Below, piece by piece: positions 26,900 to 35,906 of a stretch of DNA of 64,000 nt. Numbering within the stretch: the first letter of the stretch is position 1; the number at the start of each line of letters is the position of its first letter. The DNA lies in assembly GCA_038496445.1 (NCBI GenBank), contig JALMLS010000520.1, forward strand, positions 1-64,000, in the 5' to 3' direction. The DNA is from Trichosphaerium sp. ATCC 40318 (Eukaryota; Protista; Tubulinea). Made by a program: the position numbers and the translations under genes. The notes beneath the pieces are model-generated. The model was not told the DNA's origin. It did no database searches and worked only from the letters and a program-made list of their open reading frames with translations.

Positions 26900-27869
26900 A
26901 TGGCTCACGGTTCTGCAAGTAAGCATGCTCTTGTACGCATAGCAATGATGGGACCTCAATCATGCGGAAAGACGGCGCTAGTTTCAATGCTAACTACAGG
27001 AAACTTTGTAGAGACTTATGGTAAGCACAAGCCTTTTGCTTCTTTTCTTTAACGTTTTTCCCGCTGGCCACGTTTTGAAGTTTTTCTTTGATTTCTTGGT
27101 CTTCCTCGAGTCTCACTCTTTTTCGTATAGAGCCTACCATTGAAGACAATCATCACTCAAGCGTTAAAATACGAAAAAAAGATCAAAAAGTTCTTATCAT
27201 TGATACAGCTGGCTCGGAGAGTTCCAAAACTATGAAACAACAATGGGCAAGCCAAGCTCAGGGCATTGTGCTAGTATACGTACGTATTTGTGTTAAAGCG
27301 TCAGCAAAACCTGCAAAAAAAAATTCACATGTGTATCACGTGACACAAAAAAATGTTTCGGTTGTTTTTTTTTGCTTGTTTTTCTCTTTCAAGTTCTTAC
27401 GTTTTTTTTCGTTTAGGATGTTACTAGTAGAAGTTCTTTTGAGGCTATAGACGATGAAAGAAAACTTATCCTACAAGCAAGAAGAACAAAGAAATTCAGG
27501 ATTATTCTCATTGGAAATAAAATTGATAAAACAGTAAGACGAGTTGTTACAACAGCAGAAGGAAGGCTTTACGCTAAAAAAAACAATATGAAGTTCTTTG
27601 AAACTAGTGCTCGGTTCAATACGAATGTGACTAGTCCTTTTGAAGAGGTAGTAAAGTATGTATTGAAGCACGATAAAGGAGGTAGAACAACAAAGTCAAA
27701 GTCAGCAAGACCACATTCTTTACAGAAAGGAAAAAGTTTTAACGGAACAGAGGGAAGGATAAAAAGGGCTCAGAGCGTATCTTCTAGACCTCATAAACTT
27801 AAAAAAGGCTCCAGTTTTTCAAGGATGTCTTTCAGACGACTTGTTTCATCTAAAAGGATGGATGAATGA
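26900..27869 (+). CDS. Ras-family small GTPase with a polybasic tail and no CAAX (3 exons)
   Basis: G1 GPQSCGKT, effector loop YEPTIED, G3 DTAGS, G4 GNKID, G5 ETSAR. Confidence 0.92.
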
Positions 27870-28041
27870 AGCACATTGTAAACTTTTCTCAGGATAATTA
27901 TAAAATAATAAACAACTTGTACACTAGAAAAAAAAAAGCCTTCGCACTCCTAGGAGTTGATCATTGTCGTTTTAGAAATCCCAAACGCAGAGTATATTAG
28001 TAAACGCCATATATTGCCACGGTTCTTGAAAGAGCGAAACT

Positions 28042-30298
28042 ATGTTTTTTTGGATTCCACGTAAGGCTTTTTATTTGAGCAACACGTGTCTCAAGCGTAT
28101 AAGGTACATAAACGGAGCCTTGCTAATAGTTTTATGCCTGATTTTGATTTTATTTTCCTTGTACATGGGCCACACTGCCTTGCTGGATAGTAGCGAATAC
28201 TCTCACCGAACTAAATTGCAGAGATTTAAGTCATCTAATCCACTACCTACAACATGTAATGTCGGTTACCAACAGTTCAGTAAAAAACAAAACCGAATGC
28301 TGTATTATATCTAGATTACCATTAGAATGCCTGTGGATGATTTGGTGGCATATATGGCCTTACAGCCATACAATCCGGTTAACGTCCGTAACAAATCTAT
28401 TTAGAGCGCAACAGCTTATTCCAGTAGTCTGGTTTGTAAAGAATGGTATGAAGCTATTAAACGCGACAGTTTCTGGCACAGCTTGATGCCAATTGGATTT
28501 AAGCTTGAACCAGCGAGCACGTGGAAGAAAAGAGTAAGAAACCATCAAATACGCGTCTTAATGAATTTACTAACAACTCAAAGTGCATGGAAATGTCAGG
28601 AGCGCTACACTGGGAAAGGCACGTGGTCACCACGATACAAGAAAAAAAAAAGCAAAATGCGTAAAACTTGTCCAAAATCACGTGTTCGTACTCTTATTAA
28701 CGTGATTTAGTTGCTTTCAAGATTCTAAAATTATTAAGCGGAATAATTGTATTCCAGGATGTATTACAGAGATCCACCAGGATGGATTTGGTGCAGTAAT
28801 TATACTTCAAAAGTACAACGATGTTAGTGAACTGCATATTTTTAAAGAAGGCGAAGGAGAAGTTTTTGAAAAAAACATTGACGACATAGTAGTCACGTAC
28901 CTAAACCGTAAGTACATCATATACTACAATGATACATTACAAAGACTTTACAGAAACATTTTATCTTCTCATCACATACAGTCAACGTACACACATAGTG
29001 GAGTTGACTAGCCATCGTAACAATTTTTTTTTTGTGTGTTTTTTTTTGCTAACTAAAATGTAGCTTATACAAAAGAACTGACAATAGCCAAAATGAACAG
29101 AAAAACAAACGGAAATATCCACCTCTTCAGATTAGGAAATATCAAAGAACCCTATAGGCGGTTAAATACAAACATTGGATCCAACTCCATTGATGAACTG
29201 AATAAGCGCCTTTATTCAATAATCGTGAACCATAAGTGTGTTGTTGTGGTACGTCTATCAATATCGGTGCGATATTTAACAGTTAAATACCAAAAAAAGG
29301 TTTTGAGGGTGACACAAGAGAGAAACACAGATACAAGTTTTTTAATTTTATATTTTCCTTTCATTGAAGAAGAAGGTCCAATGTATGTTGCTATTTTCTT
29401 TAAATATTAATCTTAATCACTAACTTATTGTCACAAAAGTCCGTTACAAGGTGTTATCATCAACAGATATGGGATGGAGTATACTGATATCCAACTCTTT
29501 GACAACAATGATTCTTTTTTCATCTTAGAAGAAATGCACAGAAAAAAGATCATACAAAGGGTTTCTCTTGGTTCTAGTGATGGACTGAGAAAAACAATGT
29601 TTAAACAAGCCTCACGTCCATTGAGAAAAGCTACTTTACTTTGTTCTTGTTCTGGGCATTCTCATTTCTTGTTGTATCAGAAATCGTTAGCTGGAGTGAC
29701 TAGACTTTCAGTAGCAAGTGTTGGTTTGAATAACTATGGCGAAGCCACAGACATACTATTCCTTCCACACTCGTTTAATAGTGTCACTGAATATGACGCA
29801 AATAGAGGTATGTACTCATGCACTCGTTTTTAAAAAAGATACAGCACACTGTACAGAAAATTGACACAATGCATTTATGCTGTTTTTTTTTCATTTTCTT
29901 TCGTTACGAAAAAGTTGAAGTAGCACGTGTATTTGACGAGTTTTATGCTTGCTCATTTGTATTTTGTTGTAGATACCTTATTAATATGTACGCACTCTTC
30001 AGTTCAACTCTTTCAAGTAAACACCAAAAACTGTTTGTTTAAATGTGGAATATCACAAGGTGTACTTGTTCCTATGTTTTGTCACGTGGATGTTGACAAT
30101 CAACTTATTATTATCTGTGGTGTCCGAGAATGTATTGTATTGAATTCATTTGGTAACAAGATATTATCATTCAGGCATAGTGTTTCTTTGAAGTGTATAA
30201 AACAATTAAACAATACAATTGTATATTACTATAAACACGAAGTATCATCAGATGTTACAAAGCAGCAGGTTTTCAGAATACTTAGAATAAAACTGTAG
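28042..30298 (+). CDS. F-box protein with a beta-rich C-terminal region (multi-exon, start uncertain)
   Basis: RLPLECLWMIWWHI...SLVCKEWYEAIKRDSFWHSL fits the F-box consensus across an intron. Further open exons run to 30298. Confidence 0.65.
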
Positions 30299-31286
30299 AA
30301 ATAAATAATAGCTCTGTCATAGTTTCCCAGAACACATAACTTATTAGCTGAATGACGGATTTGACCTGAAACGTTATTTTATTTTAACTTTAAGCCTACT
30401 CTTAAAAGGGCACTTGACAGATTACAAGTACCTTTATTTTTATGTATTGGTATATTTTCCTTCATCAAGACACCATACACTGGTTATGTATTGGTTTTTC
30501 TTTGTTCTTTGTCAAGCATGGCTTGGCCATGACACTTGTACGTAGTTTTACTATTGTCACTAAAGAAGACGTTGGTCCAAGAGGTACAAGTACTTGGAAA
30601 GATATGGGAAGACCTGCATTCTGGGTGTATCATTTAAACAGCTTCAAAGCATCAGGATCTTTAGCGTAATTAATAATAATGCTGTTTGGAAGTTTAGCCA
30701 TTCTACTAATAAACCAACTTGTTCTTCATCACGTGGTCTATTAATAAAATATTGTAAGTACTGCAAACCATTTTTCGATTGTACTGAAAATGCTATCATA
30801 AATTGTGAATTTGTGGTTTAAGAACAGTATTCACGCGAACTTTAGAAACATTTCATCAAAGAAGAATTCATAAAATCGTATTTCAATGCGCTATGTGACT
30901 TGTAGTTGTGTACCTCTTTAGATACTTCCGAAATGCGTTTTATTTGAACCAGCACTGATGAAAAAACACGTGCAAATCGATAGTAGTTTTTCAAAAACCC
31001 ATCCAAGTGTACAACCGAATCATTTCCAAAATGGCTTACAAACAAAATGGAACATGTAGAGAAAAATAATTGGCTTTTTGGCATAAGTGGTTTCAGATAA
31101 CCTGCTTCTTATATTTTTTTAATAACAGATATACGTCCGTGTTTAAAACAACCAACAGGCAGTATTCACCCAGAAACAAAAAACTCATAGACTATTATCA
31201 AGCAAAACGAGATGAACAAACACAAGTATTTATTCAAGTAACTTTTTTTATCATAAAAGGGTACAAGCACTGGTTTGGGAGCAATC

Positions 31287-31693
31287 TCAGCAACTTCCGC
31301 ATGCTGCTTCACTCCAGCAACACCATTTATCACTTCTGATACGGAAACATAATGGAGATCCTGGGTAGCAGTATGCAGTTGAACCTTGAAAAAACGAAAA
31401 GTAAGTAACCAACATTCGGATACTGTTTTTTTCATTGTTCACGTACATTGACCACGCTTTTCGCGACCGCGTTTACGCCATCCAGGAGGACACCATCCAT
31501 TTGTGTCACACGTTTCGCCACAGAGTAATGGTCCTTGCTAAAGAAATGGTGTGAACAAGAATTCTATGAGGTGGTAAGGAAAGGGATTTACCTCAGTTGC
31601 TCTTTTAGCTCTTTCGTTGAGTTCATTAGATTGGACCGCCAAGGCAAAAGTTAAAGCCACAAGTACAAAGACAATAAGAGTAGTTGTTTTCAT
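31287..31693 (-). CDS. Small secreted cysteine-rich prepropeptide, 96 aa, 3 exons
   Basis: Exons 31693-31592, 31537-31447 and 31384-31287 with GT-AG introns give MKTTTLIVFVLVALTFALAVQSNELNERAKRATEQGPLLCGETCDTNGWCPPGWRKRGREKRGQCSTAYCYPGSPLCFRIRSDKWCCWSEAACGSC*. Confidence 0.85.
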
Positions 31694-32799
31694 CAGGGTT
31701 TACGTTCAAGAATTCGTGAGGTGTTGTTTATGTTGGAAAGTTTTGAGTTTGTGATAGTTTTGAGAAGTGAATTAAATCACATTCTTTACGAGTGCTTTCT
31801 CATAAATATCATAGAGAAGGTAGACAACATTGTTAAAAAGATAGTGTAGTACTATAAATTTCAGGTTTCAAACACTTCTCTTTGCTCATTGCTATGTATT
31901 TCGTGAAAAATTCCAAGATTGTTGTTTATCGTAAACATAGTTGAACTATGCAGGTTTACCATAGAGATTACTGATTTCATGCTAAATTGGTTACTGTAAA
32001 CGTTACTATGCATTACATGTTAATCTTAGAAGGTGGCGGTATAGAATATCTCGCCAGGTACAATTTCTTTCTTTGGCTTTGTAATTTTGAATTCTCCTGT
32101 AGCGTCAACTCATGTAATTCAGAAAATCACGTGCACATCTCACTCTATTTTCTTAAACTTTCTTATCCTTCGCAGTGTTATATATGAGATAGATCCTACA
32201 CTCTTGAACAAATCTAATCAACCTATACGATCTTTGTATTCAATTGTTAGCTATTGCATTTAATTAAGATGTTTGCGTCCAAATTGTATGCTCAAAGTTG
32301 TCCAATACATATTCTAAACTGCCAACATGATAAGAAAAAAATCTACATTATTGAGAACCTTACATATCTCAAAGAATGGCGTGTTTAGCATCAAGTATCA
32401 ACTCATTTCCATTCCCACACTTCGTCCGCATAAAGAATGCCAACAAATTAGCTAAAATATATTTTAGTTGTTAATAAGGTTCTCAATTAGAGGTAATTAT
32501 TGTAAATGACCATATGAATAAACACCAGTCTAATCTTGACACCCTTGTCTATCTTATTCGCACCTGAGTATTAAAGTCATTGATTACGTTTGCCTCATAG
32601 TGAATGACAATCATTATACACAGCTTGCATACATAGAATGTCAATACTTTTTCGAGAGTTACAGATGAGGGTATTTCAGCCATGTCTCGAATAGTTGTTT
32701 GACTTATTTTATTTTGTCCTTACTTCCAGTCAACACCTTTTTTGTTGTGATTCGAGTTCTCGAGAGTTTAGTCTTCCAAAATGAAACATGATTTTTTGA

Positions 32800-33973
32800 T
32801 TACTTAAATATTACTTTCTTGTGCTTTAGCTTTGGTATGGGTGCGTCGTACATTTCTTCATCTTCATCTACAACTGCCATCATCTTTCTTCTTTTCTTCT
32901 TTAGTTTATTCACAGCTACTTTAGTATCACGTTCTCGTTTTTTTCGTTTACATCTAAGTTGCTCTTTCTTTTTTTCACTACGAGGCGATTGTGTGGGTGC
33001 CTTGCATATTTCTTCGTGTTCATCATCATCTTCGTCTTGAAGTATCTTTCTTTTCTCCGTTTTTGGTTTATCCACAGCTACTTTATCACCACATTCTCTC
33101 TGTTGTTGTTGAAGTCTACTTTGCTCTTTCTTTTTTTCAGCAAATGCCAGAAGATCGGATTCCTTTTTAATCAAGTTAGAATCCATTCTAGCGTACTCTC
33201 TTTCACGCACCAAGAATACAATAGCAGGGTATGTCCATTGTGTTTTAACACGTTTGTGGTTGATAGACATGATCTCTGTCTCTGTCAAGCCAAAACCTGT
33301 CGTAGAAAGAGTCAGCCAAACAGAAGAAAACAATTGTTTTCGCACGTTTCTTTGCATGTGTTTTGTATTCAATCCGGTACTTTGGTATATTCCATGTGCA
33401 CGTGCTACATATTGTATTACCAAAAACAAGATGAGATTTCTTCGTCTTGAATCCGCAGTTGTTACAAAAGTTCTTGGACTGAATCCTATGAAGGTAAAAA
33501 AGGTCGGTTGATATTCCAAGAAGGAAGATCAAATAGTGGCTTTTCTAATGCACAAGAATAGACGAAATGAGTTTAAATCCACTATAAAATACGTTTTTTG
33601 TGATGTAGATAACGTACCGACGTAGGAAAACGAGTTTGAAAGACTGCTTTCCTCGATACTTTGGAAATAGTTTTTGATCGTGTAATCTACGCCTAAACTA
33701 ACATTTTAGGAAGTTTTTACAGCGTCTCGTCAACGTTTTGACTTGTACTAACCATATTACATTATCAGAGCCAATTTGATTCCAATGAGAGCACGTGAGC
33801 ACTACAGAGATAACACTCCTGGCATCTAAGTGATAAAACACTTCTAACAACATCTATTTACTTCACGTCAAAACAATTGATCAAACAACGTTATAGCATT
33901 GTAGTACCTCTACAGGGAGCCGCGATATATGTGGTTTCCTTCCCATTGCTTTAAGATGTGCTTTGAAAGCCAT
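32800..33973 (-). CDS. F-box + XPA-like zinc-finger/DNA-binding-type domain + charged tail (multi-exon)
   Basis: Spliced: MAFKAHLKAMGRKPHISRLPVEMLLEVFYHLDA..CSHWNQIGSDNVIW (F-box), then CNNC..FGNTICSTC..KYRIEYKTHAKKRFGLTETEI..VFLVRE, then a Lys/Glu-rich tail. Confidence 0.72.
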
Positions 33974-34140
33974 CTAAGAACAAAAAATGTAAACAAAGGT
34001 TTTCTGTGAAGTGTAACTTCCAAAATAAGGTTAAAGATGTCTGCAAATAGATTTGATAGTAGTTTTTGTGGTTTTTTTTTCTTTGACAATGAACGGGTTT
34101 TTTGATAAACTTTTGTGGCAGAAACTGGTATGACTATTTT

Positions 34141-34713
34141 TGACAAGGATTTGAAGCACTCGTAGACTATCTTGGCATTAGTTCTAACCTATTGCCGGTA
34201 CCAATACTAAAGCAAGACACATTCACAGAACAGTATATTAGCAACAGAAAGTTACACTATTCTCCGTTTAGGTTCAGACAATGATTTTGGATTTGTAGGA
34301 TGTAGTGTGCTGATCGAATGTTTATGACAAAAATGTAATTTGGAAATTAAAAGTCCAAGTACTGCTCTTGACCAATATCTATTCATGGGTATTCTGAGCG
34401 ACTTTGATATAATCATGTTTTCAGATTTCGACAAGCCGACCATGTTACCTTCATCTTATGGATGGAAACGAGATTATATCATAAATCAAGGACAGATTTG
34501 TGGTTCAAAAAACACAGCCAAGGTGATGTCAGAGGAACACGTCGAAACTTTGCTACAGGTACAGTATTATTGAGCATTAATGGGACCACTCTTGGTTTGA
34601 ATAAAAACGGTGAGTCTTACGATATGACTATTCCTAAAGGAAAATGGAGACTACACATTTGCCTGGCTCCTGATTCAAAAGTAACAATAGTAAGCTCTGT
34701 AACTAGAAAATAA
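34141..34713 (+). pseudogene. Decayed BTB-family gene fragment (C-terminal SPRY-like part)
   Basis: Frameshifted pieces (YLFMGILSDFD, TGTVLLSINGTTLG, IPKGKWRLHI) are paralogous to 48064-48957. The BTB core is missing. Confidence 0.82.
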
Positions 34714-34955
34714 AACGTCATCAAGAAACCAAAATACAGTTAGTCTCAACAGTTGGCCTAGAAAACAAGTTGACGTAGAGTTCAGTGTTATTGATGTGGA
34801 AGAGTCAAAATATGATAACACCAACAACAAGAGGTCAAGCTTAGAGTGAATACACTATTTATTCTGAGTAGTTTCTTTTGTCTTTACAAAAGGTCGAGGA
34901 AATCTATGTATCCCTCACGTTTACTCTTAATCACAATATACTATACTTTATAAAA

Positions 34956-35906
34956 TCAATTTATAGAAAGAAGTTCTACATCAAAACATAGAACAGAGTT
35001 TGGTGGAATTCTACAAAAACATATTAGCGATACCGCTTAGAAAAACAAAAAGAAAAAAAACCAAAAAACCGGAAACTTACGCTCCTGGGTATCCCTCCTT
35101 GCCATACGCATATGCTGGTCCACAAATCAAATTAGCACGCTCGCCAAGGCTCATCTATAAGGTATATTAGTCTCATAGCGAAGAGGAAAACCGAAACGAC
35201 GATCAAAATTCCAAAAAAAGAAAAACCGTTTCTAAAAATACGAAAAATAGAATGTAAGTATTTGTTGTACCTTTATTACGCCTTCATCCCATCCTCTAAT
35301 TACTTGGCCACAGCCAAGCTTGAATTTAAACTCTCTGTTCTTATCTCTTGAGCTATCAAACTTATTACCGTCTAGGAACTATGTACACGCTTTAATTAGT
35401 ACGCCAAACCCAGTTTAGAATGCGTACAGTGCCTATGAGTAAAAATAAGCATTAGACTCACGGAGAGGTTAAAAACCCTTGTGATACGTACCAACGTAGT
35501 GCATACTTACTGTTTGGCCTTTTTTAGGGAACGTTTTACCGTCTCCTTCCTTTATTATCAGTTTTTTGAAAGTCCGTACTCTAGCAAACTCCTACGATAC
35601 GTTTTAATATACCCACTATAAGTCAATGGCCAATTGTTGATGAAGTAACAAAACAATCCAAAACACAAAGCAATAATTTCAAGAAAACGCATAGACTCAT
35701 ATCATTGGTTATGAATTCGTACCTTTTTGGCGTTTGTGCATCTGAATTTGTGTTCTGGCCAATCAGCCGTCTAAACACGCCATTAAAACACCCCCAATAG
35801 TGTGTTACTGTACTTGGCATTCGGCAGAACAATAATAGACGCTCTTACAAGAAGTACAGCGCTTATCAGCATTTTTCTCACAGTTGTTATTACAAGACAT
35901 GGCCAT
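34956..35906 (-). CDS. MYND-FKBP fusion, right copy
   Basis: Mirror of 8176-9128 with splice sites intact. The 5-nt exon is at 35428-35432. Confidence 0.9.

Follow-up and report, generated by a model that had tools for sequence, protein, structure and literature searches.

In a window of 64,000 nucleotides from Trichosphaerium sp. ATCC 40318, a marine amoeba (the whole stretch of DNA that was analysed), a short, intron-split reading frame had been predicted to encode a secreted prepropeptide with ten cysteines and convertase sites. This locus raises the question whether the gene is real and, if so, to which kind of peptide its product would belong, a two-chain hormone, a defensin, a toxin and a cyclotide-like peptide all having been considered for it. 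The draft genome of Trichosphaerium sp. was reported to comprise 70.87 Mb (710 scaffolds, 37.7% GC), its introns having a mean length of 75 bp (PMC10521059). The analysis of this genome for further copies and the search for relatives of the encoded peptide led us to predict a lineage-restricted family of secreted and processed peptides, produced at high gene dosage and, by a more tentative guess, acting in defence or feeding, an explanation that we consider the best one overall, with a probability of roughly 0.6.

Structure of the gene and its surroundings

The minus strand from position 31693 to 31287 carries a gene of three exons (102, 91 and 98 nt) and two GT-AG introns (54 and 62 nt). Its predicted product is a prepropeptide of 96 aa with ten cysteines, which consists of a signal peptide, a short pro-piece running to RAKR and a domain of 65 aa. 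The features of the gene, all on the minus strand, are the following:

31182 to 31935, minus strand: duplicated unit of the window-type (singleton) subfamily, made up of the gene with roughly 240 bp of flanking DNA on its 5' side and roughly 105 bp on its 3' side
31592 to 31693, minus strand: exon 1, 34 codons, phase 0, with the ATG at 31693; encodes signal peptide, pro-piece and the ATE after KR, and ends ..ERAKR-ATE
31637 to 31693, minus strand: predicted signal peptide, 19 aa, with a hydrophobic core and A-L-A before the predicted cut (-3/-1 rule applied to the sequence)
31601 to 31636, minus strand: pro-piece, 12 aa, ending in R-A-K-R, which corresponds to the RXKR convertase consensus
31538 to 31591, minus strand: intron 1, 54 nt, GTAAAT..TTTAG
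31447 to 31537, minus strand: exon 2, 91 nt (30 codons and 1 nt), N-terminal mature part with three cysteines (C-GET-C-x5-C) and the basic loop
31454 to 31477, minus strand: basic loop RKRGREKR, in which R-[KR]-R-G-R-E-K is invariant and the final residue is R in the window-type subfamily and N in most copies
31385 to 31446, minus strand: intron 2, 62 nt, GTACGT..CAAG, phase 1, splitting the codon of Cys 4
31287 to 31384, minus strand: exon 3, 98 nt including the TGA (31289-31287), C-terminal part with six further cysteines, C-x6-C-x8-CC-x5-C-x2-C
31229 to 31234, minus strand: AATAAA hexamer, a candidate poly(A) signal, 52 nt past the stop codon

After its third cysteine, exon 2 continues with PPGW-RKRGREKR-GQ, and the product as a whole has three cysteines before the basic linker and seven after it, arranged as C-x3-C-x5-C, a basic loop of 14 residues and C-x4-C-x6-C-x8-CC-x5-C-x2-C. 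The elements named in the original prediction (signal peptide, RAKR, three cysteines, RKRGREKR, seven cysteines) agree with the sequence, and the three-exon model could be confirmed. Retention of intron 2 had been expected to produce a stop after GQCT; the translation gives the same result, and the exon-2 frame runs into a stop within this intron in all 41 models scored below. The absence of the gene from the list of open reading frames, which had also been noticed, is accounted for by its exons, each of which is shorter than 35 codons.

The GC content of the window is 35-40%. An open reading frame fragment with a Ras-family Pfam match (E 4e-9) lies at 27088-27450 on the plus strand, so that the neighbourhood of the peptide gene is not empty of genes; several further frames of 110-240 aa between 29.4 and 33.5 kb are without a Pfam match. 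Positions 28930-30618 and 31033-31755 of the window are found again as a segmental duplicate at another locus (L030; G000:C601:3000-5356), with 94% and 89% identity, respectively, and this duplicate continues for about 2 kb past the gene in one direction. In L030 the peptide gene carries stop codons in exons 1 and 2 and is therefore a pseudogene.

An amplified gene family under purifying selection

The gene had been treated as a lone one. Searches of the species' own assembly (G000; 70.3 Mb in 642 contigs) with exon 3, exon 2 and exon 1 as queries revealed that it is one member of a family amplified to about 45 copies. With exon 3, and likewise with exon 2, 50 matches were obtained, of which about 46 are strong, on more than 20 contigs. 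The paralog search that had been suggested thus yielded about 45-50 copies in the genome, 40 of them intact; the copies agree in their division into three exons, in the length of exon 2 and in the phases. Exon 1 matched at 28 loci, which were peptide-family loci without exception; a signal exon common to other families was rejected for this reason.

From 33 fetched loci 44 three-exon models were obtained. Of these, 41 keep the mature frame intact and make up the scored set; 40 are intact throughout, and one has a frameshift in exon 1. Both introns are GT-AG in 38 of the 40 intact models, the other two having a GC-AG intron 1, and the prepropeptides of the family are 96-104 aa long. Some eight other loci hold pseudogenes or fragments. 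Their marks of decay are stop codons (L019 and L030), the loss of 7 nt at the exon 2 donor (L026), the loss of the last cysteine (L018) and a frameshift in exon 1 (third gene of L012); in L031 and L032 exons are missing.

The main subfamily accounts for 29 of the 41 scored models and has the linker RKRGREKN; 26 of its members are identical in the core and three are single-residue variants of it. The window-type subfamily has six intact copies with the linker RKRGREKR (five identical, one with ..GGC), and a third subfamily, likewise of six copies, reads ..C-GE[ST]-C-DENGW.., with the linker RRRGREKR and the end ..NEAVCGQTC. Two unlike types of pro-region are encoded by exon 1, namely ..QSNELSERAKR-ATE (type A, 34 aa) and ..QSKDSEEMPDMHEKR-STE (type B, 38-42 aa). 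Genes of the main subfamily are arranged head to head in pairs whose start codons lie 307-359 bp apart, often with one gene of each exon-1 type, and these pairs are stacked tail to tail, with spacers of 740-954 bp, into arrays of three to four genes. Window-type copies are dispersed singletons on contigs C65, C15 and C584 that share only a unit of about 750 bp. In a blastn comparison of window positions 28000-35000 with the fetched copies, this unit (31182-31935) showed 87-88% identity in L001, L007, L016, L018, L027 and L028.

AATAAA or ATTAAA is present 24-72 nt past the stop in 40 of 41 copies, which is weak evidence because the copies are related. Upstream of the genes, a GACTTAAA-like motif occupies a fixed position about 73 nt before the ATG in 26 of 40 copies. 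This motif and an AACAACA-rich leader are common to the subfamilies (the upstream region of the window copy is 31694-31935) and may represent promoter or 5'UTR elements that belong to the family. Two copies (L010:5218-5622 and L011:5493-5896) have a longer type-B pro-region (..SKHAQDSEEMPDMHEKRSTE) and GC in place of GT at the intron 1 donor; the entire L010 locus can also be read as one uninterrupted frame of 143 codons, with exon 2 out of frame.

The comparison of the copies demonstrates that the gene is real and under strong purifying selection. DNA identity among the copies of the gene is 74-96%, and the identical 62-aa core of 26 copies is encoded by 25 distinct DNA sequences, in which all 27 variable columns are synonymous (pS 0.18, pN 0). 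With the exons joined computationally before counting, dN/dS was 0.03 and mean dS 0.33 over 34 distinct mature sequences of 62 codons, and the variable columns were distributed 7/2/33 over the three codon positions, 33 of 42 being third positions. Mean pairwise identity amounts to 67% in intron 1, 70% in intron 2, 78% in exon 1 and 94% in the mature coding part. Exon 1 is looser than the mature part, with pN/pS values of 0.26 (type A) and 0.11 (type B) versus 0.03. The GT-AG borders are kept in 41 of 41 scored models at intron 2 and in 38 of 41 at intron 1, despite intron lengths that drift between 44 and 71 nt (intron 1) and between 45 and 77 nt (intron 2) through all residues modulo 3. Exon 2 measures 91 nt in every scored model, and in almost all copies its frame is bounded by a stop on either side, so that 32 aa are open. 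Each intact copy has kept all ten cysteines. Given the low dN/dS, the bias to third positions and the preserved splice sites, the gene model rests on selection and not on a single reading.

Remains of the family were also found joined to a repeat. At three loci, L020 (G000:C25:340959-341499), L021 (C3:768996-769516) and L022 (C131:123228-123680), a decaying piece of the peptide gene is fused to the end of a dispersed repeat that has at least 40 copies genome-wide. The order is about 300 nt of the repeat end, an A/AAG-rich tract and then the 5'-truncated gene piece, which extends from within exon 3 (..CYPGSPLC..) into the 3' flank and crosses no splice junction. This looks like one chimeric event of retro type that was later copied three times, and it hints that the family is transcribed.

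Predicted processing and comparison with known peptides

All intact copies have a hydrophobic N-terminus, and by the -3/-1 rule the signal peptide would be cleaved after A-L-A, at residue 19. At the pro-site, all intact copies of both pro-region types have an invariant KR and then [AS]TE; the site reads R-A-K-R in type A and either E-K-R or K-K-R in type B. At four intron-rich loci of the genome Peptidase_S8 lies directly upstream of P_proprotein, and enzymes of the kexin/furin type should therefore be available:

G000:C36:153211-154893: kexin/furin-like convertase locus (Peptidase_S8 + P_proprotein)
C188:94006-95799: kexin/furin-like convertase locus (Peptidase_S8 + P_proprotein)
C27:38486-40347: kexin/furin-like convertase locus (Peptidase_S8 + P_proprotein)
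C11:113930-114710: kexin/furin-like convertase locus (Peptidase_S8 + P_proprotein)

With an N-terminal signal, a conserved dibasic pro-site and the enzyme loci in the same genome, the product has the features of a predicted kexin/furin-processed prepropeptide. The view of a secreted precursor with a convertase pro-site has probably been right, to judge from the KR that is shared by two pro-region types and from the four convertase loci. We propose that the signal peptide would take the prepropeptide into the ER, that the ten invariant cysteines would form five disulfides and that a kexin/furin-type convertase would remove the pro-piece after the invariant KR. This would give a mildly basic peptide rich in aromatic residues, for which 65 aa, about 7.2 kDa, a pI of about 8.1-8.4, a net charge of +2 to +3 and seven aromatic residues are predicted.

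A second cut may occur in the exposed loop with R-[KR]-R that lies between Cys 3 and Cys 4, which would leave two disulfide-linked chains; we put the odds of this at about even. Since the cysteines are split 3 + 7, a cut in the loop would create two chains with at least one inter-chain disulfide. The two-chain idea of the original prediction is upheld as far as the 3 + 7 cysteines around a basic loop are concerned, but the final KR on which it also relied reads KN in most copies: the linker is REKN in 29 of the 41 scored models and REKR in 11, the latter only in the window-type and third subfamilies. The internal R-[KR]-R is invariant, which says little about cleavage because nearly every residue of the mature part is invariant.

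Homology and fold searches were carried out exon by exon or on stop-free open frames. A Pfam scan of each exon found no family at E up to 10. No match was obtained in a word search of 5.8 billion proteins with open frames of 61 aa (exon 3) and 143 aa (spanning exon 1 type B and exon 3), and a HMMER profile of exon 3 had 0 matches at E up to 0.001 against 1.84 billion representatives, where an exon query of 31 aa detects close relatives only. Scans of JGI metagenomes and IMG/VR with an open-frame alignment (A1) returned pattern matches and no relatives. In the PDB sequence search exon 3 had no match and exon 2 only chance-level rows (E 0.6-1), and the best ESM Atlas scores of exons 2 and 3 (0.77-0.84, including a meaningless lantibiotic row) lie in the range of noise. 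AlphaFold2 models built exon-wise are of low confidence (pLDDT 66.8 for exon 3 and 64.0 for exon 2), and the exon-3 model matched no solved fold in the PDB by Foldseek and VIA-align. Peptide strings of the family were absent from the text of 8.4 million papers, and a literature search on cysteine-rich peptides of amoebozoans brought up nothing relevant. These results would be explained best by a lineage-restricted family without known relatives in the databases searched; the lack of a spliced product in the protein libraries searched could also reflect low or stage-restricted expression.

None of the defensin, toxin, cyclotide and insulin candidates of the original prediction found homology in these exon-by-exon searches. 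The likeness of GPLLCGETC to a cyclotide motif had already been regarded as probably convergent. In exon 2, C-G-E-[TS]-C and the five-residue loop place the cysteines approximately as in cyclotide loops 1 and 2, and the T/S alternation of cyclotides is also seen between the subfamilies of the peptide. However, cyclotides have six cysteines in a cyclic cystine-knot within about 30 residues, whereas the amoeba peptide has a 14-residue basic loop after Cys 3, and in place of the C-terminal Asn/Asp cyclisation site it ends in ..C-G-S-C-stop. A cyclotide (PF03784) was rejected, as none of the exons has a Pfam match at E up to 10 and the first three cysteines alone (C-x3-C-x5-C) fit; the cyclotide framework, profile and cyclisation site are all missing, and the resemblance is most simply due to chance or convergence.

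A member of the insulin/relaxin family (PF00049) was rejected as well, on account of the missing Pfam match of its exons and a cysteine distribution of 3 + 7 and not 2 + 4. The two have in common a precursor with basic sites between two cysteine-bearing segments that would be disulfide-linked after cutting, but the insulin A chain has CC-x3-C-x8-C and the amoeba peptide CC-x5-C-x2-C, and the piece excised from the latter would be at most 5 residues. Known defensins were rejected because no exon has a Pfam match and none a notable PDB match. The cysteine order of exon 3 fits the knottin order C-C-CC-C-C, with a last loop of 2 residues versus 4 or more in knottins and a low-confidence model. Defensin-type host-defence peptides of animals and fungi and Kex2-processed fungal peptides are similar in their organisation, with a signal peptide, a short pro-piece with a dibasic or RXKR site, a small cationic cysteine-rich domain and, as in the amoeba genome, convertase loci; they differ in that no sequence relationship was found and the ten-cysteine framework is without a match.

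Possible roles of the peptide

The existence of a real, secreted and convertase-processed ten-cysteine family without known relatives, which is the core of our interpretation, appears highly probable. About 40 genes, mostly head-to-head pairs in arrays, would provide the gene dosage for bulk production of one product; that forty diverged genes in paired arrays are held to one protein points to dosage for a fixed and abundant product. Divergent pairs in arrays are a layout familiar above all from the chorion genes of silk moths and from histone genes, whose products are needed in bulk and in stoichiometric amounts. The amoeba genes resemble them as near-identical small genes in divergent pairs, with about 300-360 bp of shared 5' region and in arrays, each small gene having a short signal-peptide exon. 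The proteins are unrelated, however, and the members of an amoeba pair share the mature peptide and differ solely in the signal/pro region.

What this product does can be stated far more tentatively. Our leading suggestion is a mass-produced extracellular or phagosomal peptide for defence or feeding, defensin-like in logic and not in ancestry; by our guess a unit of the coat or matrix would follow as less probable, and a signalling ligand and any other role, equally placed, as less probable again. Defence peptides and toxins usually diversify, and in most defence-peptide families it is the mature part that does so. The amoeba family shows the reverse, a frozen mature part with drifting signal and pro-regions, which argues against an arms-race toxin and is unusual for a defence peptide, and a net charge of +2 to +3 is modest for a membrane-active one. 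The frozen mature part favours a product that meets a constant partner, be it a microbial target that is conserved, the amoeba's own coat or a receptor.

An own coat as partner leads to the alternative that survives best, although it is still rather unlikely: the peptide might be a structural block, released in bursts and incorporated, by cross-linking or packing, into the fibrous coat (tectum), a cyst wall or the matrix of spicules, where the seven aromatic residues could possibly bind polysaccharide. Trichosphaerium has a fibrous test (PMC10521059), and an invariant product of about 40 genes, arrays of divergent pairs that share promoter regions of about 330-360 bp and a domain rich in cysteines and aromatic residues would all suit such a block. 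Against it, the exon-wise Pfam scan detected no carbohydrate-binding or matrix family, and dibasic pro-peptide processing together with a size of 7 kDa is more typical of bioactive peptides. A more far-reaching variant, in which the roughly 40 genes in chorion-like divergent pairs mass-produce an invariant two-chain peptide of new fold that serves as a unit of the flexible coat or as a self-factor governing the polymorphic, multinucleate life cycle, is doubtful; if true, it would mean a peptide class without counterpart outside the lineage.

Improbable, in our opinion, is a two-chain signalling ligand (pheromone, autocrine or life-cycle factor) in which a 3-Cys chain is linked to a 7-Cys chain and recognised by a specific receptor. 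The invariant R-[KR]-R, the REKR (RXKR) of 11 of 41 models and the odd cysteine numbers on each side are compatible with it, as are the convertase loci and the combination of conserved mature and variable pro parts, which is the pattern of hormone and pheromone precursors. But forty genes give a dosage far beyond what signalling would require, most copies have lost the second site (KN), and in a peptide in which every residue is conserved the conservation of the loop is not specific to cleavage; moreover, the exon-wise Pfam scan gave no insulin-family match and the CC-x3-C-x8-C spacing of an A chain is absent.

The passenger of a mobile element or a gene derived from a virus, with copy number resulting from transposition, is very unlikely. 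The copies lie scattered over more than 20 contigs, three fragments of exon 3 have been joined to a dispersed repeat at its end, and the Trichosphaerium genome has been reported to be rich in giant-virus genes (PMC10521059). Yet the peptide is under strong purifying selection, the IMG/VR scan found no relative encoded on viral contigs, and the shared unit of only about 750 bp, on which ground a mobile-element origin was rejected, consists of gene, promoter and 3' flank and showed neither a transposase nor an LTR nor any other feature of an element. Finally, the suspicion that chance reading-frame pieces with chance splice sites, or a dead repeat, have been mistaken for a gene would agree with the lack of a database relative in the Pfam, word and profile searches of exons and open frames, but it is refuted by the dN/dS, the third-position bias, the splice sites kept despite drifting introns and the ten retained cysteines.

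A better knowledge of such peptides is desirable, since it is largely from secreted peptides rich in disulfides that new antimicrobial, toxin and signalling scaffolds are drawn; to our knowledge, very few are known from free-living amoebae. Our analysis also implies that an entire amplified family can escape ORF-based and standard gene calling if its exons are all shorter than 35 codons. The peptide of 7 kDa is short enough to be synthesised as a target for assays. It represents a new family within a known kind, the disulfide-rich secretory prepropeptides, and stands out by copy number, invariance and the arrangement of its genes. Silent divergence (dS about 0.2-0.3) among about 40 genes, with zero amino-acid change in 26 of them, suggests that this peptide would be abundant and functionally important for the amoeba.
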